A stretch of DNA of 64,000 bases from Macrostomum lignano (GCA_002269645.1 NIVC01001399.1:1-64000); one strand, 5' to 3'; positions 22,301 to 64,000 are shown, counted from the stretch's first letter. Notes: generated from the sequence alone by a model not told the origin. Numbers and translations: made by a program.

Positions 22301-23988
22301 TCTATTGTTGGCTTATTAAACTCCAAAGGTTGCAAATTTAGTGTCTAATTGGCCAAATATCTCATCCTTGGCAGATGTTTAGGCAGGAAATTATAATTAG
22401 GTAGCAATATCATGAATTGCTGTTTTATAATTATATGTGCAGGTGACCTTGATATCAACTGCCTACTTAGCCTAGGATCTTATAGTAGCAAATGAGACTT
22501 TCTGGCCTATAAACCAAGATAGTTTAAAAGTTGAAGGCTAGGCACCTGTTGTATTGATAACATTATTGCTAGTTGGGCTCCTAGTGACTACCATTGAGCA
22601 ATCTTAAGGCTGTTATTTATAAATGCTTCAGTCTATCATTTTAATAATTGCTTTTGCTCCTGGAATGTTATATTCACTGGGTGAACAATTATTGAGGCTA
22701 ATTTAGCCCTGAATCCAAGGGGGTAAGGCTGGGTTTTTTATACTTGAAAGCAGACAACTTGCCTTCTTTGGTTTCCTTGTGATCAAATTTGTCATTGTTG
22801 TTATCATTAAGCACTAATTCATCTTGCAAATGATTTATTTCCTCTTTTTTAAGATCTATAGCACTAATTAAAATGATTAAAAAGGAAGTAAATATCAAAA
22901 CAATAGTATTAGGAGTTTCTTAGTCAGAACAACTAATTCAAGCAAGATTTGATTGTTTAAACTTTGCTTGTTTAACTAAGAGATAAAAGTCTTCCTAGAA
23001 AAAAGAGGAAACTTTTGTGTATTGCTGAGTTTATGTGCATAAAGTACAATACATTTGATGACTAATGATAGGTTTAGTAAAAACTTAATAGGAACTTGAA
23101 TATGCATATACAGTAATACTTTATTGCCTATATTCTAACATACTTAGTACTCTACTATATATAACAATTAACAATAATATGCATACATGCATATGTACAT
23201 GTCTATTTAATAAATATAATATATGTATATTTAAAACAAATTAGCTCATTTAATCAATGAGCTAATCAATCAAGCTATCAATCAAGCTATCAATTTAATC
23301 AAAGGTAGGTATACTCATACTATACTTTTTAATGCTATATGAAACAAGTAGCAAATAACAATGACATGTGTGAGTTATAAGTGAAAAAGTACAAGCAATA
23401 TAATATGCTTAAATATACTATGTACAGAGTAAAGATGCAAAAAGAAACATACATATCCTATAATGCTATACATGTACATGAGCCAAGTAGGTATAGCAAA
23501 TGTAAATTTTCTTGGCAAGCAAAATTAATCATAAAATCATGTAAGACTTATTTGCCTATTATAATGGGCAGAAGCAAATTTATAAACATAACAGTTAAGA
23601 TCAATTCCTAAAGCTCTTTTGTTTTCAATAGACAAAAGAAGCAAATGTGAAAATCAAGAAGATGACATTTTACTTCTCAAGTATGTCTTGATTAAATGCA
23701 TTTTAAAAAACTGCACTCCATTTATGTTGTAGTTACTGGAATTGTCAAGCATACTTGTTTATTATTGTCAACCATACATGCGCAACAGTCGGCCGAGTCG
23801 GCCGATCCGGCCGACCGATTTGGCGGCCAACCAAGTAAGTCGCAAAATTGATTAACCGCCAAAAAAAACGAAAAAACAAAAGACGAAAAAGGGGAAAGGA
23901 AAAGGAAAAAACGAGAAAAAGGGAGCAAAGAGAAAGAGAAAAACACAAAAAGAGTTGTAAGTGCTGTAAGTTGCAGCACTGAAGACAA

Positions 23989-24785
23989 GGTAAGTCGCAC
24001 CGAGGGCGAGCTAAGTCGCACCGAGGGCGAGCTAAGTCGCACCGAGGGCAAGCTAAGTCGCAGCAGGACCGAGCTAAGTCGCATCGAGGGCGAGCTAAGT
24101 CGCACCGAGGGCAAAATAAGTCGCACCGAGCGAGAGCTAAGTCGCAGCAGGACCGAGCTAAGTCGCACCGAGGGCGAGCTAAGTTGCAGCAGGACCGAGC
24201 TAAGTCGCACCGAGGGCGAACTAAGTCGCACCGAGCGAGAGCTAAGTCGCACTGAGGGCGAGCTATGTCGCAGCAGGACCGAGCTAAGTCGCACTAAGGG
24301 CGAGCTAAGTCGCACCGAGGGCAAAATAAGTCGCACCGAGCGAGAGCTAAGTCGCAGTAAGTCGCAGCAGGACCGAGCTAAGTCGCACCGAGGGCGAGCT
24401 AAGTCGCAGCAGGACCGAGCTAAGTCGCACCGAGGGCGAACTAAGTCGCACCGAGCGAGAGCTAAGTCGCACTAAGTCGCAGCAGGACCGAGCTAAGTCG
24501 CACCGAGGGCGAGCTAAGTCGCACCGAGCGAGAGCTAAGTCGCACCGAGGGCGAGCTAAGTCGCAGCAGGACCGAGCTAAGTCGCATCGAGGGCGAACTA
24601 AGTCGCACCGAGCGAGAGCTAAGTCGCACTAAGTTGCAGCAGGACCGAGCTAAGTCGCACCGAGGGCAAAATAAGTCGCACCGAGCGAGAGCTAAGTCGC
24701 ACTGAGGGCGAGCTAAGTCGCAGCAGGACCGAGTAAGTCGCAGCAGGGCCGAGGTAAGTCGCAGCAGGACTGAGTTAAGTCGCAG
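23989..24785. repeat. Subterminal about 21-bp tandem array of the hAT element (GAGCTAAGTCGCACCGAGGGC)n
   Basis: Tandem units visible; core TAAGTCGCA also recurs near both TIRs (about 23836, 29931, 29955). Confidence 0.9.
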
Positions 24786-25134
24786 AGCATCTTTAGGATT
24801 ATTAGGATAGGATTAGTTTAGGATGAATTTAATGTATCACTTACTAGGGTGTAGGCTACGTGTGCATTAACGCATCAATTTGAAAAATTAAGAATTACGA
24901 AGCCAGAAATGGCTAAGGAATAGAAATAGGGATAGAATAACTTATAAGCAGTAATTTTTCAGCCCTATTACAATTGCAAATCATACTTTTAATAATATTT
25001 AATTAGCAAATTAAAACTGCAAGATTCTAACGGTCTTATATATGAACTTAGAAGAACTGTAGTCTTAATGATTATGCATGTACCATTGTAATAATTGATT
25101 AAAATTGTAGCAGATTAAAACTGATAAAAAACTT

Positions 25135-28100
25135 TCAAAATAGTCCACTTAGCAAATCAGAATCAGAATCTTTAATTTCCTCGTCTACGTTGGATTCTTT
25201 TTGCCGTTGACCTCCAGGAGCATCAGAACGCCAGTGTTTTTTCAGCCAATCATTGACATAAATATCCGGCTTAAATTTCATCAGCGGAGGCCCATTTATT
25301 CGAATCCGTAGTAGATGCTCCAATGTTTTTGGTGCCAAGCGTGTTCTCCTGTCATAGGCAATGTGCTTATAGATAGAAAACCCTCTTTCAGCCTCAGCTG
25401 ATGATATTGGCAAAGTTAACACAACCATAATTAGATTCTTTATTCTGGGCAGCCATTCAACAGTTCTTGTCTCTAGAAAGTGATAGAAAGTGACTCCAAA
25501 ATTTCACCGGACCTTTGCCTTTGTAGGCACAGAAGTCAACACTATGCGAAGTGATCAAACTTTTTAGGAGTAGACCGAACTGACCAGAGATTGTCCTTTC
25601 TGTAGCGCGTTCTGAAGCATCTGCATCTCTAGAGTCTGAATCAGAAAGATGGTCCTCTGTTTCAGATTCAGAGCTGTCATCTTCCATTCCAAACCGTCTA
25701 GCAAGAGGTATGATTCTCGAACTGTATGTAAAGACAGTATGTAATGTTTCAGCATTAGGCAATAACACTGGGTTGAGCACATTAAATATTGAGTAGTCAT
25801 CCTCAGGAAAATAATTACGCAGCTGATCAATTATGCTATCAATGATTCGACTGCGAATCTCATCCAGTGCTGGATAAGCTCCCATGTCAACAACACTGCC
25901 ACGTCCACTAGCATCAAATAATCTATTTCTTAGAGATCTGTCTGCAGCAGAACCTGGTTGCTTCAACTCAAACCTCTCTGTTGGATCGCTGCTTCCAGGG
26001 CCGGAAGGACAAGCAAAGTTAGAATAAGATAGGTCTCTTGTGTGACATCCTGAATGGTATTCCAGCTGCGGATATCCATCTGCAGTTCCCAAAACTCGAC
26101 GACACTTGCAGGAAGCCAAAAAGTCCACAATGCGAGGACCATTGTTCGTTTTTAAGGTTTCTAGTGAATGGATAAGGTTAGTGTGGCGTTCTTGCAAGCC
26201 AATAAATGTACCCTTGGCTCTTTGAAACTGCAAGGACTCAAATTCCAGTAATTTTAGAATGTCCATGAGAAATAGATGTAATGAATAATACCGGACATTT
26301 TGCAATGTTTTCAATAATCCAGAGGCAGTTGCTTTACTTTCGTCATCAAAGCCTGAGGAAGGTGATTTGATATTTTCTAAATTTGTCAGAAGCAAGTAGT
26401 ACGACTTTCGAATCACATCAAGAGCAGACACTTCCGATGCAACCCACCTGATGCGATATATTCTTTTTAATTCATAGAAAACCAAGTTGAGTGCTTCCGA
26501 AGTTTGTGCCAAAGATGCCTTACGTTTAACAGTGTGGCTCATATAAAATTTGTGTAGAGAATTTATATTCTTATCGAGATGTTGCATAAATGGGAAGATT
26601 GCAAAGGCATGATAGATTGAAAGTTCTAACTTATGCGCTGCACAATGGTGCTGAAAAAATTGTTTGCTAGCCCAAGGCCTCAGTTGACTTATTAATCCCA
26701 CTCGACTTCCTGTCATTACGGATGCACCATCAGTTGTCACCCCCATAGCCTTCGTTTGATTTCATCTTCTAGCTTGTCATCCGAAAATAAACGGATGAGA
26801 AGTTCATAAATGCTTCGTCCAGTCTCTACTTCAGTCAGACGTTTAAACCGATAAAAAAACATCAAAGGTTGGCTGTTTTCAAGAACTCTGAAGTATATCA
26901 TGACGTAGCTGTTTGAATGAATATCAGACGTTGTATCTAGTACAATAGAAATCGGAAGATTGTCAGCACTTTTAATGTAATTCACAAATGTCCGATGCAT
27001 TGTATTACTGATTGATTCCACCATTGCTGCGGCACTTTTGCGATGCTTATGATGGCTCCCCATATCCAACCCATTTTTTACTTGTAAATCAATCATATTT
27101 GGATGAGCACTGAATGGAATATTAGATTTGACTTCGGCATAAACTGTTGTCAAAACTCGGGCTGTTATTTCATCTCGTTTAGTTTTAGCTAGTCTAGCGG
27201 CCTCATTCATCTGTTTGAGTTGCTTTGCAAGAACTGAAGTATGTTTTTCCTTCATCCACTTTATGGCGTCACTGTAAAGTGTATTTGATGAATGTTCCTG
27301 TAGTTTTCTTCGTACGCTATCTTTTGCATGACCTTTGGGAATGTAGCCTTGTTCTGTTGCAAAAGTTAACTTACGTTGGCTCTCTAGATTTGTCTCCTTT
27401 TTCTTATGTGCATTCAAAAATTTTCTGCAGATCCGACATTGTATTCCAGATCTTGATAGATCTTCGGTGTTTTGAACATATTGAAACCATGTCTTCATTT
27501 CTTGTGACACAAATTTTCTTGAAAATGATCTGCAATGGTCAAATTAGAGAATATTTTGGGATTTGGACTATTTGTGAGTATCTAAAAGCAATATGCTAAT
27601 AAGTGCAATACACAGTACACTATACATTAATTTATAGTTCGTCAGTTTCCATTTACTTACTGTGACTGGTGCATCTCCAAAGAATGTAACCACTCCTCTC
27701 AAAAACCAGATGTATCCTCCCAGTCCTTTTTAGGGAAAACTTCAATATTTTCGCCCATCATAGAGGAAGACGAGGGCTTTGATGCTGAAGTGGCTAGACA
27801 TGCGTCTGCAGATGTGCTTATGCATGGTATTTTTCTTTGCGATGGCCCTGCTTCTGCAGTATTTACTTGTACTATTTCAACATCACCTGAACCCCTTGAG
27901 TCGCTCGAATCTAAATCAACAATAGGACTTTGGCAAAGTGATCGTTTCGTTGATTGTCTTTGAATATTTACTTGCCTAATAATTTCCACTTGTAGTTTGC
28001 TTGTTTGCTGGTCATTCTCCAACAACTCTCTTCTTTCCTGTACATTTGCAGCAGAGCAAAAATTAGAAGTTTCTGCAGCAGCAGTTTGAACAGCATGATC

Positions 28101-29288
28101 TCGATTAGCTGCTATTTGCTCTGAAAATTCATAGGACCTGGCCAATTCACTACGGTGTGAGCTTTCAGAACATGGAGCTGGAGCAGGAGCTAGTCGCATT
28201 TCGATTCTTTCTGTTGCTGATGAAGCAGATGCTAATGCTGAGTCTGCCAATGTACCTGCTTCTCTTGAAGGTGTATTTATGATGGCTTCAATATTGTCCT
28301 CTAAAATCCAATGAGCACCTGAGCAGTCATTTTCTCTACCTGGAGTCAACTGTCCAAGTTTCCACCTTGTAAAAAGCAAAGGCTTTCGTAACTCACTGCT
28401 GGATTCAGGGCACCGGTTTATTGAATAGTCCTCATGACCAAGTTCATCCCATTCTCTTGCTGGCTTTAAGATGTAGTTGGGCTTGTCTCTTAGCCTATGA
28501 TAAATGGACTCAAAAAATGTGCACCTGTTATTTTGTGTACTTCGTGCATAGATGATCATGTCATGCACATTGTTCCTAATAATTTCAGCTAATGAGTTAT
28601 CAATGATAATTTTATCTTCATAAACAGGTCTTCTTTGTGTTGCATGCATTTTAGCTAGTCGCAGTTTTCCAATGCTACTGGCAGTTGTGGAACTTGAACT
28701 GTCCGATTCTGATCTAGAAAAGTCTCGTTGATACAAGAGAATAATGGCCATAGCACTTTTACCATTCCCATTCTTTAATGCATTTGGTTCTGTTGGAATT
28801 GTCTTACTAGCAGACTTGAAAAAATCAATGATGGATGACTGCGATGATCCACTAGGAGCGGAACTTGGCAGCCCATGTCTAGTTTTTCCCTGATACACAA
28901 TAGATGTATTGGTAAAAAACATATCTGCTGCTTCCTGCTTCTCTTTTGATGCAATAACAAAGAAACTGCTGTCCGTTTTGAAGCCCGAGGACCGATAGAA
29001 GTCAGCAGAAAATGAAACCACAGGTCGTCTAAAATCGCCGCTATATTCTTGAACTCCAATCAGAAGAAAATCACGGAGTCTCACTGGCACTGATCCTAAT
29101 AGCATTGCAGTTGTGGAACAAACTTTCTTCAGCTCAATGAACTCTGAAAATTCTTGAGATCCAATATTCGGCTCATCAGTATTTAACTCATTTATAACAA
29201 TTGAGCACTCACTCTCAGCTAGAATACCATTGATAGCTAGGATGCCACTTAGAATCAGTAGGCAAAGACAACTAAGGCTGTACATCAT
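25135..29288 (-). pseudogene. Disrupted hAT transposase with N-terminal signal-peptide-like and lamin-tail-domain-like module (about 1340 aa when repaired)
   Basis: ATG 29288 after a 5'UTR intron (29290-29383); phase-2 intron 27530-27660; motifs CRIC, SIVLDTTSD, GVTTDGASVMTG, HHCAAHKLEL, RIRWVAS, LPISSAEAERGFS. Lesions: TGA 27699-27701, 1-nt frameshift near 26740, 10-bp duplication 25474-25493. Confidence 0.85.
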
Positions 29289-30854
29289 TCTGTAAAAGAT
29301 TAAGTCGAGTATATGATTTTGGTGATAAAATAAAATTGATTTATGAGTATTACTATATAAATAAAACATTTAAAAGCCCTTACCTTTACCAATTCATGTA
29401 CAGAAAGTAAGTGTAAATACAACCAATTGCCTTGCTAGTTTAGTTATATGCTCGTATCAGATGCAGGCAGACAGCATAGGCTGCCAAGGTGCTATAAGTT
29501 AAGGTTAACTTTCACTATTTGGCTTTACAGACTGCTTTTATCGCTGCATGCATTGACTTAGCCTTAGCTTGTGCCATCATACTCATACAGCTATATATAC
29601 ATATGTATCTCTGCCACTCCCCACTTTTGCAACCTTACACTGTACAATCATGCCTAAAACACTCCGTGTCAAGTGTACTGTTCTAGTGCCACATGGGGTA
29701 CAAATACGATTAGGAATGACAAGAGTCAAAACCATACATGCACAATAGTTGGCCGATATGGACGACTGATTTGGCGGCCAACCAAGGTAAGTTGCAAAAA
29801 TGCCCACCCAAATAAATACCAAAGTAGTATTAAGTAGCTGACGAAGCATTTTGCCTTAATAAAGACAGTCATAGTTACTCCTGCCGTTTACCCAAAGTTG
29901 CGTTAATTTTGCTTTCAGGTTTTTTTCATGTAAGTCGCATTTTTGGCCGAAAACTAAGTCGCACGGCCGACCAAATTTTGGAGGTTGCGCATGTATGTTG
30001 TCAACAGTGCAATGGCTTTTCCATATCTATTTGTTCTCTGCCATGTCAGATGTTCATTATTGCCAATACAGCTGCTACCACTAAGAAATTGTGAAACTTT
30101 TGACAGCCTCCCACTCTGTCATGTGCATTTTCAGGATAGAGATAGTTGCAATCTCTTCCATGTGCTTGGCAGGCTTCTGACCTCTGTGCATCTTTGAGAT
30201 AGCAGCTGAAACAAATAAGTGTTACCTAAGTAGTAGTGTAGGAATATTGTCTCACTTATACAATAGGCTAAGTATACATATATGGTTGATGGACAGAACA
30301 ACTGCCTAATAACTCTGCTTTAATAACAGTTAGCAAACAGTTGCTTATAAGACTAAAAGCAATGAGAATTTTTTCCCAAATATATCCCCAGCAACATTGG
30401 AGCAGACAAAGCATAAGATAATAAAGCGACTAAATCTGCTAAAAGCAAGCTTTCACAAACTAGAGCAGCCTTTCAACTAGGAGGGGTACCACCCCCTTCT
30501 TTCAGATTCTTGGCTTTTGTCAGGTAGATAAATGACTAGTTATCGTTTTTTTTAATTCTAAAACTATGAAGTTAACTGTGTCAGTTAATGAGATTTCAGT
30601 TCTTGCAATCAAGATTTTCTGTGTTTTATAGAGTCAAGCACTTTTTAGCAAGCAATTGCTTCCATTCTTTTCCCATATGGCATTTACCTTGTAATCTTTA
30701 TTAAATTACTGTGTTAAACTTATGACATCGAAGGTTGATAAAGTCACACACTTAATAAAAACTGATATATTCTTTGCATTTCCCACAGCAATTGGTCATC
30801 AGCATTAAGAGTTTTTAGACTGTCCAATATAACCAATAAGTGCATCAATCAGCC

Positions 30855-33800
30855 ATGTTCCACCTGAGTAAGACTCATCGTCTAGGCCTGATGATAATCA
30901 TGGCTCTAGCCTATTTTGCTGTAGAATTAGTTGTTGGCCACCTGTGCGACTCGGTCACTTTGGTTGCCGATTCGTTTCACATGCTGTCAGATGTGCTAGC
31001 ACTGATTGTTGCTCTGGGGGCTGTTCGGGTTGGCAAGAAGCCAAGAGATGGTCGGCATACTTACGGCTTCCAACGTGCTGAAATATTGGGTACATTGGTT
31101 AACACTGTCATGCTAGTGACTCTGTGCTTCACTATCATTATTGAAGCTGTTCAGAAGATTATTGAACCGCATCCGATGAAAGATCCAAAACTCATTGTCT
31201 ATGTTGGCTCTGGCGGCCTGCTCATTAACCTGATTGGTATTTTGCTATTCTGCGGTCACAGCCACGGGCATGGCGGCCATGCATCTGAGCATTCGGTAAT
31301 TATTAATTGCTGTTTTGCAGTTATTCATGTAGCACTAGTCTCCCTTCATCTCAATCACTGTTTCACATCATCTCAATCACTGCCTCCCTTCATCTTGATC
31401 ACTGTCTCCCTTCATCTTGATCACTGCCTCCCTTCATCTTGATCACTGTCTCCCTTCATCTTGATCACTGTCTCCCTTCATCTTGATCACTGTCTCCCTT
31501 CATCTTGATCACTGCCTCCCTTCATCTTGATCACTGTCTCCCTTCATCTCAATCACAGTCTCCCTTCATCACAATCACTGTCTCCCTTCATCTCAATCAC
31601 AGTCTCCCTTCATCTCAATCACAGTCTCCCTTCATCTCAATCACTGTCTCCCTTCATCTTGATCACTGTCTCCATCTTGATCACAGTCTCCCTTCAGCTC
31701 AATCACAGTCTCCCTTCATCTCAATCACTGTCTCCCTTCATCTTGATCACTGTCTCCCTTCATCTTGATCACTGTCTCCCTTCATCTTGATCACTGTCTC
31801 CCTTCATCTTGATCACTGTCTCCATCTTGATCACAGTCTCCCTTCAGCTCAATCACAGTCTCCCTTCATCTCAATCACTGTCTCCCTTCATCTTGATCAC
31901 TGTCTCCATCTTGATCACAGTCTCCCTTCAGCTCAATCGCTGTCTCCCTTAATCTTGATCACTGTCTTCATCTTGATCACAGTCTCCCTTCATCTCAATC
32001 ACAGTCTCCCTTCATCACAATCACTGTCTCCCTTCATCTCAATCGCTGTCTCCCTTCATCTCAATCACATATGAATTCCATACCCAGTCTCCTCAGATCC
32101 CATACCCAGTCTCCTCAGATCCCATACCCAGTCTCCTCAGATCCCATACCCAGCCTCACCAGAGTGTCAATCAGTCCCAGCTGATTACCTTTCTCATTCC
32201 CAAAGCACCAAGCGGAGCTGCTGATGCAGCACAAATCGGTGGAATTTCTACCAGAGGAGGCTCGGCCAATGGCGCAGGCCGCGGCAGCAGAGGCCGGTGA
32301 CGAGCCAATGAAAGTCGAGTGCATGGATGAGCAAGACAATGCCAGTCCAAAGCGTGCGACCGCCGGCGCTACTGCTGCTGCTGCTGCTGCTTCCGGTGCA
32401 GTCGCAACAAGTTCCGGTGAGCTATTTAATGATTCGCTGTAAATAAACTTTTTGTCTCGGTTTTGATTCCTTAAACTGTTTAATAAATTTAATTTAATAT
32501 TGCTTTAGCTAAATAAACTTTGTGGTTTAAAAAATTGCTGCATATAAATATACTTATTATTCAGAAGTAAATGCTAGCTGAGGCAGTGACCTCTCCAACC
32601 TGTCTCCTTGTATTTACTCTACGTAATTATAGTCTCCCACTCTATTTATCTCTACCTCTCCATCTCCCTCTCCTTGTCTCCCTCTACCTATCTACCTCCC
32701 CCTGTCTTCCTCTTCCTGTCTCCCTCTCCCTGTCTCCATCTCCCTCTCCTTGTCTCCCTCTACCTATCTACCTCCCCCTGTCTTCCTCTTCCTGTCTCCC
32801 TCTCCCTGTCTCCATCTCCCTCTCCTTGTCTCCCTCTACCTGTCTCCCTCTTCCTGTCTCCCTCTCCCTGTCTTCCTCTCCCTGTCTCCCTCCCTCTCTA
32901 CCTTTCCCTGTCTCCATCTCCCTCTCCCTCTTACGTCTCCCTGTCTCCTTCTCCCTATCTACCTCTCCCTGTCTCCCTCTCCCTCTCCCTGTCTCCATCC
33001 CCCTCTTTGCCTCTCACTGTCTACCTCTCCCTGTCTCCCTCCCTTTCTACCTCTCCCTGTCTCCATCTCCCTCTCTACCTCTCCCTCTTACGTCTCCCTG
33101 TCTCCCTCTCCCTATCTGCCTCTCCGTCTCCCTCTCCCTGTCTCCCTCTCCATGTCTCCATCCCCCTCTTTGCCTCTCACTGTCTACCTCTCCCTGTCTC
33201 CCTCCCTCTCTACCTCTCCCTGTCTCCATCTCCCCCTCTACCTTTCCTTGTCTCCCTGTCTTTGTCTCCCTCTCTTTGTCTCATTCGTCTCCCTCTCCAC
33301 CTCTCCCTCTCCCTTACTCTGTCTCCATTTCCCTGTCTCTCTACGTGTCCCCCTCTCTTCACCTCATCCTTTCTCCTCTTTCCTCGTATCCGGTCACTAA
33401 CTTGTGTTAACCTAAAAGGAAAAACTACGTTTTACTCTGCATAAACAGCAGAAGTAAAATTACTTTGATTGTATTCGTTGCATAAGCAATACTGTTACAT
33501 TTGTATTTGAACTGTTATATTAGAAAGGCTAAGAACTTTCAGCACCCCATGGCCTAGGGTGCAGTTAGCTGGAAGGTATGCGCATTCTGTGAATATTTTT
33601 CACATTTCTGCTGCGACTCCTTCGCCTTGGCTCCTTCCCAGTTGAAAGCTTCCTTATTTAGGGTTGATGTCTGTCCTTTAATGCGTTCTCTTTCTTTGCA
33701 GCTGCAGCTGCTTCGATTATTCAGACACACACGAACTTTATTTACAAGCGGTTAATTGTATCGTGTTTGCTTCACAATTTTTTAAGGGCCAACTTGCAGA

Positions 33801-60069: not shown

Positions 60070-63000
60070 TAGAGGTCGGACGGGATCCCGATCCCGATCC
60101 CGAAACCTCGGGATCCCAAGGAAAATTGGATTCCCGCGGGATCGGGATCCCGACCCTAAAAAAAACGGGAATCGGGAACAGGTCCTTTGGTTCCAAATTT
60201 GTAGAATTGATGATTGCTTTTATGCATTTTGTTTTACTTGTACTTGTTACATCGTTACTTTTTTGGTTACAAAACTTTGCATTCATTCTCTCGTGTTTTA
60301 CCTCTTGATCTTAACATTGTTAAAGTTATAAATATTCCATTGATATTTACAAACTTTGTAGAACATATAAATCAAATCGGATTAGTACGCATGGTTGCGC
60401 AATGATTAGTGAATAGAAATTACAGAAGCTCAATACATGCGCAATCTTTGCTGCGATTAAAATTTGATCACTCCCTTTTCACTCCATTATAAGAACACAA
60501 AAACTTTTTTTTCTCCCTTATTTTAGCACGTCTAGGCCTGTGATTGTGTGCGCAAAGGTTATATAACTTGCGCAATCGTTTATTAATTTATTTTCACTGT
60601 TTCAGTTTCATCATTTTTGGGCGTGAAATCTGAGGAGTGAATTCAGTAGTTAGTGTTAACACATGCTGCTTGTAATGTTGTATCTTAAATAGCTTTTTAC
60701 TTTTTGTGTAATGTAAATAATGTTTTTTTTAAATGTTATGATCGTTTGTTCTATTTTTAATTGCTAAAATAAAATAAATAAACCAAATGTCTTTAGACAG
60801 GATTTACATCAATATTTTCCATTCCAAATGCTTTCCAATTACTTAACAAATCACTTATCAAGTCATCATTAATTCATTCATCAGTCGTTGTGCAGGTGGA
60901 AAGTTGCAAACTTCTGTTGTTTATTTCTCAATAAAAAGGCAGTTGGTGGATGCTACAAAAATGGTACATGTACATTTACAAGTGTAACTTCCTGATTTGC
61001 CTCACAGAGATGGAGATCTTAGTGATATGGATAACGTGAGTGCCATCGGCAGAAACTGTTCGCTTTAAACAAGCAACAAAAAACAGGATATAAGAAAGCA
61101 CAACAGCAGACAAAGTAGGCAATATTTTACTTTTGCACGTTTAATTATTTTACTTTGAATTAGTGTTGAAGTAGGACATCGTGATCCACCTTACAAATAT
61201 AGATAAATTGTGTCATATTTTAAAAGGCTAAAATTTCATATCACTTTCTATCAAATCTACAAATTTGTTAAATGTTTAAGGAATAAGGTCCTCAGGGATT
61301 TTATATTGCTTTTTATAATGTGGATCGCAACTTCCCTTTTAGCGCCAATCTAAATTGAAAAAGTAACTGCGTAAGCCATAAAGTAAAAAATGCCTAAAAA
61401 TCCGTAACAAACGTCTCTAGCATTGGCAAAGTGCATCTTCGAAATTATTTTCCGGCATTGAAGTCAACAAATGGCAAATTAATCTTACACAAAACAATCT
61501 TTTCTAGCAAATCAGGTGACAGAGAAGCCCGCCTATCTGAGAAAACATTTCTAGCAATACTAAATAGCCTTTCACTAGAAACGCTAGATGCAGGAATGCA
61601 AAATAGTTTTTTCACTAAGGGAATAATCGAAGTCCGAAGCCTTTCATTTGCCTTTGTAGACCAGTAGATAAGTGGATCACTACTGGCTGGCTCCAGTTTT
61701 GAGGTTAGAAACTCCGTCAATAGCTCTTCAATGCAGCTGCTGGGCTGCAGCACTGAGTTGGCATTAAAATTACTGAACAGATCGTCCAGAAGACGGCGCT
61801 TTGGAGGAGGGGGCTGGTCTAAAGCTTCCCTCGTGCATTCATCATCCTCTGGAGAAGGCGAACTTGCAAAGTTGCCATTGCCAGAAGTTACTTCTTGTTC
61901 TTGTCTACTATTATGACCAGTGACAGTAGTAGTCGTAGAACAGAATTCTAACACAATCTTCTTCTTCTGGTCTCTCTCAGCAGCAGGGAAAAAAGCAAGC
62001 TTGTAACGCGGATCTAGGGCTGTTGCCAGGATGCAGTCCAATCTGATAGGGATGTCAGAAAATCGCGAATTGACACCACGTACCAGTGAATCAAACAGCG
62101 ACCTCACACCCAAAATTGCATCCTTATCAAGTGCTGCTTTTTCGAGAAACTTTTGCAACAGTGCAACCATTGGAATCAAATATGAGATGCTGGTTGACTC
62201 TTTGCTAACTTCCAGAGTTAGCTCTTCAAAAATTGAAAGCAGATTAACTACTTTTTCAATTATGGTAAATTCATTGCTCGAAATTTCTTCGAAATCCGAT
62301 CGATCAGCAACGAAGGCAGAGATAGCACTTCACTATTCCAAAACTCTTTGCAGCATGTGTAATGTAGAGTTCCAACGAGTTGGAACATCACACTTGAGCT
62401 TGTGCTGTGGCAGCTCCAATGCTTTCTGAAGCTTTTCAAATCGGCCTTGAGATGTTGTTGAATGGTGCATGGAGCTAACAAAGTGTCGGCATTTGCCTAT
62501 AATTGCCTCAACACACGGTTGCTGCTTTAGTGCATCTTGCACAATCAGATTCAACTTGTGAGCTGTACAGCTCACACTTCCTCCGATATTCTCCGAGAAA
62601 TTGGAGTCAGCAGTAGCACCATTGGCTGAAGAAGGTAGCATTGTGCGCACTGCCTTCAGCATGTTAGCAGCATTGTCAGTAACAATTGCTATTGTTTTAC
62701 TTTCGATACGCCAGTCAGCGAAAATCTCAGTCAGCACATTTGCAATGTTAGAAGAAGTGTGAACTTCAATCAGATGTTGCATAGCCAGTGTTGTGCTAAA
62801 TCTCTCTAGCTTGCAGACTTGAGCTTGGGTGTTGTCGTTGCAACAATCAGCCTCAGAGACGGAAAGCATTTCTTTGATTCCGTGGACTGTGAGTCCAAGG
62901 AAGGACAGGCCTTTTTCAGACCAAATGTCACAGGTAACTGCCACTGAGGTCAAGTCGTCAAGCTGCTGCCTGATGTTCTTCTTGGCACAGTTGTACACAT

Positions 63001-64000
63001 CATTGAGCTTTTCGCGGTAAAATTTTTCAGACTTAATTGTATACTGTGGTGATGCAATCTTCATCAGGCCTTGAAATCCTGCTTCTTGAACCATGGTCCA
63101 TGGTTGACCATCCAACAATATCATACAAACAATTGCTAAGTCAAGTTCCTTTGACCTGGAATCCTCGATGTCCCATGGACGGCTTTTCTTAATTGATTGT
63201 TGCAATGTTGGCTGGAAAAGCCCTTCAGCTTTTGAGCTCTCCTTCAGTTTCTGGCTGTCTCTCTGCTGTTTAATTTGTTGGAGCTCTTCATATAAGTCCT
63301 TATGGCATGATTGTAAATGGCGAAGAGCCCCACTTGTAGATCCAGTGGAACACAGTAACATTTTTCCACAACCTGGGCTTAAGCATTTAGCAAAATCTTG
63401 TCCATTGTGCACTTCCTTTTTAAAAAAGCGCCAGACTGGACTTGAGTTTATACCAGACATTAGGTTGATAACTTGATGTTAATTTGACTTGTATATGGTG
63501 TAGCACTTGTGCTGAAAATGGAAAATGATGAAACATTAGTTATACATGTTTACAATCTACATTATAAGAAAATATATAAAAAATATAGGCACCTAATGGT
63601 TTTAGAATTATTTTTATAGTTTGTTATTGAAAGTACTAAACATAAACAGTTTAAATCAAATGGCAATAAACTAGGCCTATTTAGTGACTAGTAATGATAA
63701 TAAGATAATAATAGCAAGTTGATTGTTGAATAATAAAAAATTCACTGAATTATTTGAATAAAAACTATAGATTGAAAAATGAAATAGCATGCTAAGCTAG
63801 GATATTCAATGCCTATGCCCTTATTCACTTTTTTTTCAATAAGATTTTTAGAGACATTAAATACAGGACAAAGGCCTAGTATTATTCTAAGGAATAGGCT
63901 AGATTACATTAAAATCAATTGAAGAATTTAATTACAAAAATAATAATCAAACTGAACTCCTAACTCTATTCTATTAAATAATTCTTAATATTGACTTGAC
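60070..64000 (-). mobile_element. hAT (Ac/ZBED-type) transposon; other end outside window
   Basis: Starts TAGAGGTCGGACGGGATCCCG with multiple GGGATCCCG subterminal repeats after GTCTAGAC (NTCTAGAN-like hAT target); contains a transposase frame. Confidence 0.8.
61445..63460 (-). pseudogene. BED zinc-finger hAT transposase (ZBED1/4-like), 671 codons, two adjacent in-frame stops
   Basis: SPVWRFF...C...C...ALRHLQSCH (BED), VAVTCDIWS, IVTDNAANM, CTAHKLNLIV, DVPTRWNST, IPASSVSSERLFS. Both ORF pieces share one frame, broken by TAG TGA at 62330-62335. Confidence 0.9.

Follow-up and report, generated by a model that had tools for sequence, protein, structure and literature searches.

A hAT transposase headed by a signal-peptide-like leader and a secretory-type lamin-tail domain homologue

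A stretch of 64,000 nucleotides of Macrostomum lignano DNA (GCA_002269645.1 NIVC01001399.1:1-64000, referred to here as the window) contains a broken copy of a multi-copy flatworm hAT "cut-and-paste" transposon. In this family, and in a large and deeply diverged set of relatives, the transposase gene begins with a signal-peptide-like leader and an extracellular-type lamin-tail domain (LTD). This is an odd arrangement for an enzyme that must work in the nucleus, and no description of a hAT transposase bearing an LTD or a signal peptide was found in the literature that could be searched; one hit on lamin tail domains in flatworms concerned an intermediate-filament protein and was irrelevant. An earlier note, made from the sequence alone, had described a hAT element bounded by terminal inverted repeats (TIRs) and a target-site duplication (TSD), in which a frame with a signal peptide-like start and an LTD-like module reads through a TGA and a phase-2 intron into a Zn-finger/DDE/hATC transposase. 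That observation is confirmed in full, on the minus strand of the window.

The element occupies 23773-29997 (minus strand) and is 6,225 bp long. Its 14-bp TIR, CATACATGCGCAAC, lies at 23773-23786 (+), the 3' end in transposase orientation, and as an exact inverted match at 29984-29997 (-), the 5' end. A search with this pattern gave 4 matches at up to 2 mismatches against 0.24 expected by chance. The TIRs are flanked by the identical 8-bp TSD TTGTCAAC at 23765-23772 and 29998-30005. Three more M. lignano copies, at the loci L011, L012 and L010, have the same TIR and their own TSDs, GCAACTAG, CTTGGGTT and AATTTAAA, and homology to L011 and L012 begins and ends exactly at the TIRs. GCA_002269645.1 contains 18 near-identical annotated fragments. 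A search for other copies of the element inside the window found none.

The reading frame opens at ATG 29288 and reads MMYSLSCLCLLILSGILAINGILAESECSIVINELNTDEP...EFSEFIELK...DYSINRC...WKLGQLTPGRENDC. Immediately before the ATG lies a putative 5' intron (GT..AG, 29290-29383, minus strand) or trans-splice acceptor, recognised from the sequence alone, and in its spliced reading an in-frame TAA lies just upstream, so that M1 is the start. Exon 1 encodes the leader MMYSLSCLCLLILSGILAINGILA (29217-29288, minus), the expanded LTD of some 300 aa (28323-29207, minus; aa 28-322), with conserved cysteines at 28, 256, 293 and 322, and a linker (27702-28322, minus; aa 323-529). The linker holds conserved CSS and RD.AV motifs, a basic cluster QRKIPC (27822-27839) and the motif WEDTSGF (27702-27722). 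An in-frame TGA at 27699-27701 (minus) is followed by a phase-2 intron running from GT (27660) to AG (27530), and splicing gives REEWLHSLEMHQSQ|SFSRKFVSQEMKTWFQYV, which is colinear, residue for residue, with the intronless homologous proteins P0008 and P0016. The same intron is present in L011, L012 and a further, 95%-identical locus, L001.

Exon 2 begins (26737-27529, minus) with a Zn-finger region (WFQYV...CRICRKF) and the putative first catalytic Asp (IVLDTTSD), colinear with proteins P0007, P0008 and P0040. The central transposase segment follows (25457-26746, minus), with the putative second catalytic Asp in GVTTDGASVM, the HCAAHKLEL motif and the insertion domain; it is 98% identical to the M. 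lignano protein PAA56523.1 (P0006), which carries PF27073 and PF05699. These catalytic assignments were made by reading motifs in a conceptual translation whose frame is broken in this copy. The last coding segment (25135-25428, minus) comprises the hAT C-terminal dimerisation region (SSAEAERGFS...) and the stop codon, and matches hATC (PF05699) at E 2.6e-7 with 30.8 bits against a cut-off of 21.4, together with a weak phmmer match to the same region of Hermes (E 0.012). In contrast, hmmscan detected neither DUF4371 (PF14291) nor PF27073 in the window protein, although the latter profile seems absent from the Pfam copy used. Precomputed hits to PF27073 are on record for P0006 and P0007, and to both PF14291 and PF27073 for P0008 and P0009, and it is on these relatives that the placement of the transposase in the Buster/ZBED5/FAM200 clade largely rests.

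The window copy is dead. The TGA is a nonsense mutation of CGA (Arg), which is the codon found in L012 and in L001, whose protein P0001 has Arg here, whereas P0002 has Lys and L011 shares the TGA. Two further frame breaks, overlooked by the earlier note, mean that this copy cannot make a transposase at all: (i) a 1-nt deletion in a G-run (5 G, where L011 and L012 have 6; + strand CCCCC 26740-26744), which shifts the frame at RRLWG|VTTDG and could also be an assembly error, and (ii) a 10-bp tandem duplication, TCACTTTCTA x2 (25474-25493, minus), which shifts the frame before the hATC region, is also present in L011 and is absent from L012 and P0006, which read KFWSHFLETRTVEWLP. Two of the three lesions are thus shared with a copy at another site that has a different TSD. 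The copies L011, L012 and L010 are also defective, so that among the four M. lignano copies examined none is intact and an autonomous source is assumed rather than seen.

What is the module at the head of this protein? No Pfam match at E <= 1 was obtained by hmmscan for the 529-aa N-terminal product, nor for the relatives P0036, P0042, P0059 and P0064. A search of PDB sequences with the module profile gave only chance matches to designed ankyrins. Nevertheless, hhalign aligned the module with Pfam-certified LTD repeats of secreted or membrane proteins at 98.3% probability and E 2.3e-14, over template columns 1-181 of 181, and the compared repeats themselves score PF00932 at E 7.5e-95. The module profile also hits multi-LTD proteins at E 1e-45, and those proteins are PF00932 hits at E 1e-95 to 1e-101. 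The module is therefore a real, if remote, LTD homologue of the secreted, cysteine-bearing type, although its membership rests on profile-profile homology. A first AF2 model from 10 sequences was poor (pLDDT 62.6), and a second from 143 sequences was confident (pLDDT 82, pTM 0.81) and beta-rich, but Foldseek searches of PDB and BFVD gave nothing significant with either model, only weak matches to antibody-type Ig domains (E 0.02-0.2) and no lamin tail, so that the fold search neither proves nor disproves the assignment.

The fusion is a family feature. A profile search with the module found 415 clusters at E<=1e-3, on contigs that for the most part come from metagenomes and SRA assemblies. Of the 48 proteins with a tail of at least 130 aa, long enough to judge, 32 continue into the transposase, and 6 of the rest are multi-LTD host proteins. 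The architecture is seen, for instance, in P0001, P0002, P0004, P0008, P0016, P0036, P0038 and P0040, and single ORFs reach 1,249 aa; the intact 1,147-aa ORF of P0040 sits on a contig bounded by a 43-nt inverted repeat, whereas the TIRs around the P0089 ORF at locus L013 were not convincing. The module evolves under purifying selection (dN/dS 0.19 and 0.18), and the linker is itself constrained in frame (dN/dS 0.29-0.36). The four cysteines are conserved in 77/96, 107/117, 105/109 and 100/100 sequences, and a basic cluster lies upstream of W-E-D-T in 20 of 22 relatives. The window leader has a maximum Kyte-Doolittle (KD) hydrophobicity of 2.89, and 58 of 81 leaders have KD >= 2.0. A position profile over 62 family members places the h-region at -24..-15, polar residues at -9..-7 and Cys at -6 in 48 of 62, an n-h-c layout also found in secreted LTD proteins. 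By these heuristic criteria alone the leader looks like a cleavable signal peptide, and it is conserved family-wide.

The interpretation offered in the earlier note is partly supported. The hAT element, the LTD-like module and the leader hold, and of its two alternatives the obligatory fusion, as an ancient and selectively maintained family feature, is supported, whereas a secreted product ending at TGA 27699 beside a separate transposase is not, since the TGA is a mutation that occurs together with other inactivating lesions. Its suggestions that a secretory tag relates to cell-to-cell or horizontal movement, or to autoregulation by ER sequestration, remain conjecture.

The reading that best accounts for these data carries a probability of about 0.6. 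The analysis itself establishes a defective copy of a young, multi-copy hAT transposon of M. lignano or a very close relative, with the shared lesions described above, and the order of leader, single LTD enlarged by two insertions, linker of 130-200 aa with a basic cluster and W-E-D-T motif, and Zn-finger/DDE/hATC transposase, with the module under purifying selection within the transposon lineage. The rest is inferred, including translocation, cleavage, disulfide formation, DNA binding and catalysis. The copy was probably mobilised in trans by an intact relative, and the leader plus LTD was probably captured once from the 5' end of a host gene for a secreted or membrane LTD-repeat protein, where a signal peptide abuts the first LTD in the same way. 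The favoured mechanism, tentative and on its own less likely than not, is that the leader is a real but incompletely efficient ER signal, such that the protein has two fates. One fraction would enter the ER, where the four conserved cysteines can form disulfides, and be kept from the genome or exported. The fraction escaping translocation would be imported into the nucleus through the basic cluster to carry out cut-and-paste transposition, with the Ig-like LTD serving as an accessory binding module for DNA, chromatin or a partner. This dual fate is an assumption made to resolve a paradox, as a functional signal peptide with no stop-transfer segment would put the whole transposase in the ER lumen. 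Moreover, the basic cluster often reads RRKR or RKRK, which could be a proprotein-convertase site rather than an NLS.

Of the alternatives, the one that survives best, though unlikely, is that two separate products are made, with the leader-LTD-linker part secreted on its own, the transposase made from an internal AUG, an alternative promoter or SL trans-splicing at the acceptor of the 27530-27660 intron, and the long ORF only a packaging convenience. In its favour, an intron separates the two parts in M. lignano and ATGs follow it (LEMHQSQ, SQEMKTW), NCBI gene models start the transposase at MKTWFQY (P0007), and many relatives end exon 1 right after W-E-T-T-K-Y-F. However, beyond the mutational origin of the TGA and the constraint on the linker, frame and colinearity are kept across the junction in every lineage, and at least 17 clusters have uninterrupted ORFs of 1,000-1,250 aa with no Met conserved at the junction, P0008 and P0040 having none.

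Less likely again is that the hydrophobic N-terminus is a membrane or structural element, such as a nuclear-envelope tether or an oligomerisation helix, with the LTD working in the nucleus much as the lamin tail does and the cysteines binding metal rather than forming disulfides. The window leader has about 20 hydrophobic or neutral residues, long enough to span a membrane, AF2 models it as one helix (residues 4-25), and lamin tails bind DNA and chromatin. Against this, the h-region across the family is only about 10-14 residues and is followed by a polar c-region, the flanking charges (acidic after the h-region) favour an N-in/C-out orientation that would put the LTD in the lumen, and the closest LTD relatives are secreted or type-I membrane proteins with the same leader-LTD junction.

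Similarly doubtful is a fully secretory transposase, in which the whole protein, or a convertase-released transposase, leaves the producing cell and acts after uptake by others, for example from soma to germline or between organisms, which would favour spread. The classical n-h-c leader with its short h-region, the extracellular-type LTD with four conserved cysteines and the RRKR and RKRK motifs that fit furin-type sites in many members are consistent with this, and the Buster clade includes elements noted for horizontal transfer (SPIN). Yet no known route takes a secreted 1,100-aa protein into another cell's nucleus, the transposon DNA is not carried along, the M. lignano family has only a weak basic motif (QRKIPC or QRKRPC), and the idea is without any experimental support. 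The evidence does leave room, although this too is improbable, for a widespread, old clade of hAT transposons whose transposase truly passes through the secretory pathway, with a cleaved signal peptide, a disulfide-bonded LTD and perhaps convertase release in some lineages. Transposase dose or location would then be controlled by ER export, or the enzyme could even act in cells other than the one that made it, and this would be the first DNA transposase with an obligatory secretory step. Finally, a one-off nested insertion or exon capture peculiar to this copy, or an artefact of reading through unrelated ORFs, has nothing but the oddity of the architecture to recommend it and is refuted by the same architecture in three further M. 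lignano copies and in lineages down to 29-34% identity, with continuous ORFs and purifying selection.

With the Buster-clade hAT transposons and their domesticated derivatives (TcBuster, AeBuster1, SPIN; ZBED5, FAM200A/B, ZNF862, SCAND3) the element shares the 8-bp TSD, short TIRs beginning with CA, the C-terminal hATC region, a FAM200-ZBED5 RNase-H-like core (PF27073) and DUF4371 on record for relatives, and a W...C..C zinc-finger region before the core. None of those is known to carry a hydrophobic leader or an LTD, and the LTD-less relatives found here (P0010-P0015) are only 22-27% identical. The four TSDs do not show the nnnTAnnn preference of Buster, but four is too few to judge. With the secreted or type-I membrane LTD-repeat proteins of invertebrates (e.g. 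P0049, P0067 and P0129 with an Fz domain; PF00932) the shared features are a signal peptide abutting an LTD with the motif order INELN.D.P - E(F/Y)IEL - FVIGS - NG..A(V/I)(A/I)L - D..VY(S/A)R - S(L/I).RC - TPG..N.C, and the Cys pair in SxxRC and NxC. Those proteins have 3-13 tandem repeats and a C-terminal TM segment, whereas here a single LTD is enlarged by two insertions (about aa 128-172 and 190-230), carries two extra conserved Cys (28 and 256) and is fused to a transposase. Bacterial secreted LTD-nuclease fusions of the ExeM, Xds and NucH type also place a signal peptide, an LTD and a DNA-cleaving enzyme in one polypeptide, which suggests that the LTD can accompany DNA-processing enzymes, but their catalytic domain is EEP or another nuclease rather than an RNase-H-like DDE transposase, they are truly extracellular, and no homology of the enzymatic parts is claimed. 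Proteins with a competing signal peptide and NLS, such as FGF3 and PTHrP, have the layout of an N-terminal ER signal plus an internal basic nuclear-import motif seen here, but are growth factors with no enzymatic or mobile-element role, and dual targeting here is only a hypothesis.

As far as is known, DNA transposases are nuclear enzymes, and the retention of a signal-peptide-like leader and an extracellular-type domain under purifying selection, across lineages that share under 30% identity, implies a step in transposase biology not described for hAT elements. This could be targeting, dosage control, folding in the ER, or a new DNA or partner-binding module. If the capture occurred as inferred, it is also a clear case of a transposon taking and keeping part of a host gene, the reverse of host-transposase fusion genes. 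Should the LTD prove to bind DNA, this would also bear on the unexplained pairing of LTDs with secreted nucleases in bacteria. M. lignano is transgenic-tractable and intact single-ORF relatives exist, which makes the question open to direct test.

The ends of the element have features of their own. An internal copy of the element's other terminus (CATACATGCACAAT..., 29733-29810, +) forms, with the outer TIR, a 265-bp MITE-like unit (29733-29997) inside the 5' end. A separate MITE insertion was considered, but the inner flank does not repeat the outer TSD and the unit is present in all copies, including L011 and L012, which share the same ORF there, so it is an ancestral part of the element. 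Near the other end TRF identified a subterminal tandem array of about 37 units (23991-24785, +), with a 21-bp unit and the core TAAGTCGCA, which occurs 40 times inside the element, all on one strand, and 0 times in the other 58 kb; it is a candidate array of transposase-binding sites, a role that is inferred. A 204-aa ORF at 23722-24336, considered as a possible gene, is just this tandem repeat read in frame.

The element lies on the minus strand and is delimited by an exact 14-bp inverted repeat, CATACATGCGCAAC, found at 23773-23786 and 29984-29997, a pattern that gave 4 matches at up to 2 mismatches in the window against 0.24 expected by chance. Each arm is flanked by the same 8 bp, TTGTCAAC, at 23765-23772 and 29998-30005, and the unit is therefore a 6,225-bp element with the hallmark 8-bp target-site duplication (TSD) of hAT transposons. 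Reading from the 29997 end, the first 265 bp (29733-29997) look like a complete miniature element, in which the outer terminal inverted repeat (TIR) is combined with an internal copy (29733-29746) of the opposite terminus, roughly 80% identical by eye (CATACATGCACAAT...TTGGCGGCCAACCAAGGTAAGTTGCAAAA). As this stretch is present in all of the full copies examined (the genomic copies L011 and L012), it represents an ancestral composite end and not a private insertion. There follows a possible 5' intron or splice acceptor (29383-29290), in the spliced reading of which an in-frame TAA lies just upstream of the ATG at 29288, and then a 529-codon open frame (29288-27702), a TGA (27701-27699) with 13 more in-frame codons after it, a GT..AG intron in phase 2 (27660-27530) and finally the transposase, which is read in three frame-shifted pieces (27529-26740, 26746-25460 and 25428-25138).

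Beyond the coding region is a 0.8-kb array of a 21-bp repeat (23991-24785) with the core TAAGTCGCA. This 9-mer occurs 40 times in the element, always on the + strand, with 37 occurrences in the tandem array, one near the 23773 end and two near the 29997 end (positions 23836, 29931 and 29955), and it is absent from the remaining 58 kb of the 64-kb window. The length of the array differs between copies, being much longer in L011, and these repeats are candidate subterminal transposase-binding sites. A purine-rich (A/G) low-complexity stretch, for which tandem-repeat analysis (TRF) calls periods of 17 and 31, lies between the terminal region and the array (23866-23952).

The element is a real, recently mobile transposon of Macrostomum lignano. 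The transposase pieces are 98% identical to the M. lignano protein PAA56523.1 (P0006), whose 90% identity cluster holds 18 annotated fragments on many scaffolds of GCA_002269645.1. The two full genomic copies, L011 and L012, are about 98% identical to the window element, their homology starts and stops exactly at the TIRs, and they have their own 8-bp TSDs, GCAACTAG and CTTGGGTT. A sister family whose transposase is 70% identical, represented by L010, uses the same TIR and has the TSD AATTTAAA. Pfam finds the hAT dimerisation domain in the last coding piece (E 2.6e-7). Placement of the enzyme in the Buster/ZBED5 clade rests on its relatives, which carry PF27073 (FAM200-ZBED5 RNase-like) and PF14291 (DUF4371); PF14291 is not detected in the window protein itself.

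This copy is dead, and the TGA is a mutation. At 27699-27701 the window and L011 have TGA, where L012 and the 95%-identical L001 (a genomic locus, with its protein P0001) have CGA (Arg) and the related protein P0002 has Lys. The window also has 5 instead of 6 G in a homopolymer at 26740-26744, which breaks RRLWG|VTTDG, although this could be an assembly error, and a 10-bp tandem duplication (TCACTTTCTA x2, 25474-25493) that breaks the frame before the hATC domain and is shared by L011 but lacking in L012 and P0006. Of the other copies, L011 has an additional stop inside the N-terminal module, L012 has a 36-bp deletion and a frameshift, and L010 lacks the 5' half of the module. The window copy and L011 thus share the same nonsense codon and the same duplication yet sit at different genomic sites with different TSDs, from which it is inferred that an already defective progenitor was probably moved in trans, although no intact M. 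lignano copy was seen.

The fusion is a feature of the family. A search with the first 360 residues found five proteins, of which P0001 (95% identical) reads ...WEDTSGFREEWLHSLEMHQSQ up to the same intron and P0004 (45%) reads straight through into the Zn-finger with no intron, whilst in the genomic locus L006 the module is followed by an ORF that carries PF27073. A search with the repaired transposase found P0008 (34% identical, 1,009 aa), which carries the C-terminal half of the module, the linker and a complete transposase in one ORF, with upstream exons in its locus, L008, supplying the leader and the first half of the module. An exhaustive profile search of 1.84 billion representative proteins returned 415 clusters at E <= 1e-3 and 198 at E <= 1e-10. 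Among 143 retrieved members, 48 extend at least 130 aa beyond the module, and of these 32 match a transposase profile, 6 are multi-LTD host proteins and 10 are unresolved; 17 of the 32 are about 920-1,250 aa long and match most of the transposase profile. The relative P0040, with 1,147 aa in one uninterrupted ORF from leader to hATC, lies on a contig whose two ends form a 43-nt inverted repeat. The splice proposed in the earlier note restores exact colinearity with the intronless relatives, with 35 residues between F(R/K)E and the WL/WF..Y motif. Nei-Gojobori dN/dS for the module is 0.19 against L001 (dS 0.12) and 0.18 against the locus L005 (dS about 1.6), and for the linker it is 0.29-0.36. 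The module is therefore maintained by selection within the transposon lineage.

Pfam does not recognise the module directly. Its profile, however, hits proteins such as P0049, P0058, P0067 and P0129 with 3-13 matched stretches, which Pfam calls Lamin Tail Domain (LTD) with E from 1.3e-31 to 1e-101 across the four, and P0129 also has a Frizzled CRD. P0049 consists of a signal peptide, then eight LTD repeats, then a C-terminal TM helix, and each repeat has the same motif order as the whole 300-aa module. Profile-profile comparison of the module with the eight repeats gives 98.3% probability and E 2.3e-14, covering template columns 1-181 of 181 and module residues 30-322, with two insertions in the module at about 128-172 and 190-230. 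AlphaFold2 with the 143-sequence alignment predicts a confident, beta-rich single domain (pLDDT 82.2, pTM 0.81), for which Foldseek finds only weak Ig-like matches in PDB and BFVD, such that the fold evidence is compatible with an LTD but not specific for one. Four cysteines are conserved across cluster representatives, namely C28 in 77/96, C256 in 107/117, C293 in 105/109 and C322 in 100/100, where C293 and C322 correspond to the SxxRC and NxC pair of the extracellular repeats.

The segment that precedes the domain is signal-peptide-like. In 58 of 81 members with a plausible Met start it has an 11-residue Kyte-Doolittle maximum of at least 2.0. When 62 members were aligned on the invariant Glu of INE, the mean hydrophobicity was 1.8-2.9 from -24 to -15, fell from -14 to -10 and was polar at -9 to -7, with Cys at -6 in 48 of 62. 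As judged by this heuristic alone, the arrangement is the n-h-c layout of a cleavable signal peptide with a core of about 10-14 residues, although the leader sequences themselves are not conserved. The host LTD proteins show the same leader-LTD junction.

The linker contains conserved CSS and RD.A(V/I) motifs, and in 20 of 22 members a basic cluster lies 15-45 residues before a conserved W-E-D-T-x-x-F motif. The cluster reads RRKR, RKRK or KKKK in many members and KRxC in several, whilst the window copy has QRKIPC, and it could be a nuclear localisation signal or, in some lineages, a convertase site. In one subgroup of relatives (P0061, P0064, P0074, P0087, P0105 and P0138) it reads N-R-R-K-R-(K/R)-L-S about 20 residues before W-E-T-T-K-Y-F, a sequence that fits both a monopartite NLS and a furin-type R-x-K/R-R site, and in these relatives exon 1 ends right after the WETTKYF motif.

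What the analysis establishes is that the element is a hAT transposon, that leader, LTD, linker and transposase are arranged in one frame, that this architecture is old, widespread and under selection, and that the present copy is non-functional. How the protein came about and how it operates are matters of inference. The leader plus LTD would have been captured once from the 5' end of a host gene for a secreted LTD-repeat protein, and the leader is inferred to have a function, since a relic would not keep its hydrophobic layout across lineages that share under 30% identity. The simplest such function is ER targeting, but there is no second hydrophobic segment and complete translocation would therefore remove the enzyme from DNA. 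For this reason a dual fate is favoured, with a probability of about 0.3-0.35, in which part of the protein would enter the ER, where the cysteines can pair, and part would escape and be imported into the nucleus through the basic cluster, with the LTD acting there as an accessory binding module. Of the alternatives, the production of separate products by internal initiation or trans-splicing is unlikely but survives best, a membrane-tether or structural helix combined with a nuclear LTD is more doubtful, and a truly secreted transposase is, by a small margin, the least probable.

The enzyme, as placed by its relatives, is an ordinary Buster-clade hAT transposase and the head is a divergent member of the LTD superfamily of the secreted type. 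No hAT, or any other DNA transposase, with this head is known to us, and full-text literature searches, which did not extend to Repbase reports, found none. Such an architecture would surprise a transposon specialist and is open to direct testing, but the key point, whether the leader is used, rests on heuristics. The observation made in the earlier note, of a hAT transposase fused in frame to a signal-peptide-like leader and an LTD-like module, is confirmed. Its interpretation is only partly upheld, in that the fusion, the LTD and the secretory-type leader stand and the idea of two products separated at the TGA does not, whilst its functional ideas remain hypothetical.

In the surrounding DNA, the gene next to the insertion encodes a cation-efflux (ZnT/CDF) transporter exon (30840-31442, + strand; PF01545, E 3e-32), and the right TSD of the element lies about 830 bp upstream of this ORF. 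A second, unrelated hAT-type gene is found at 61445-63460 on the minus strand, where a 375-aa ORF with a BED zinc finger (PF02892, E 2e-4) is followed by a 244-aa ORF with the hAT dimerisation domain (PF05699, E 1e-11). This gene has no LTD head, and a TIR-like AATACATGCGCAAT, with 2 mismatches to the TIR of the element studied, lies at 60432-60445.
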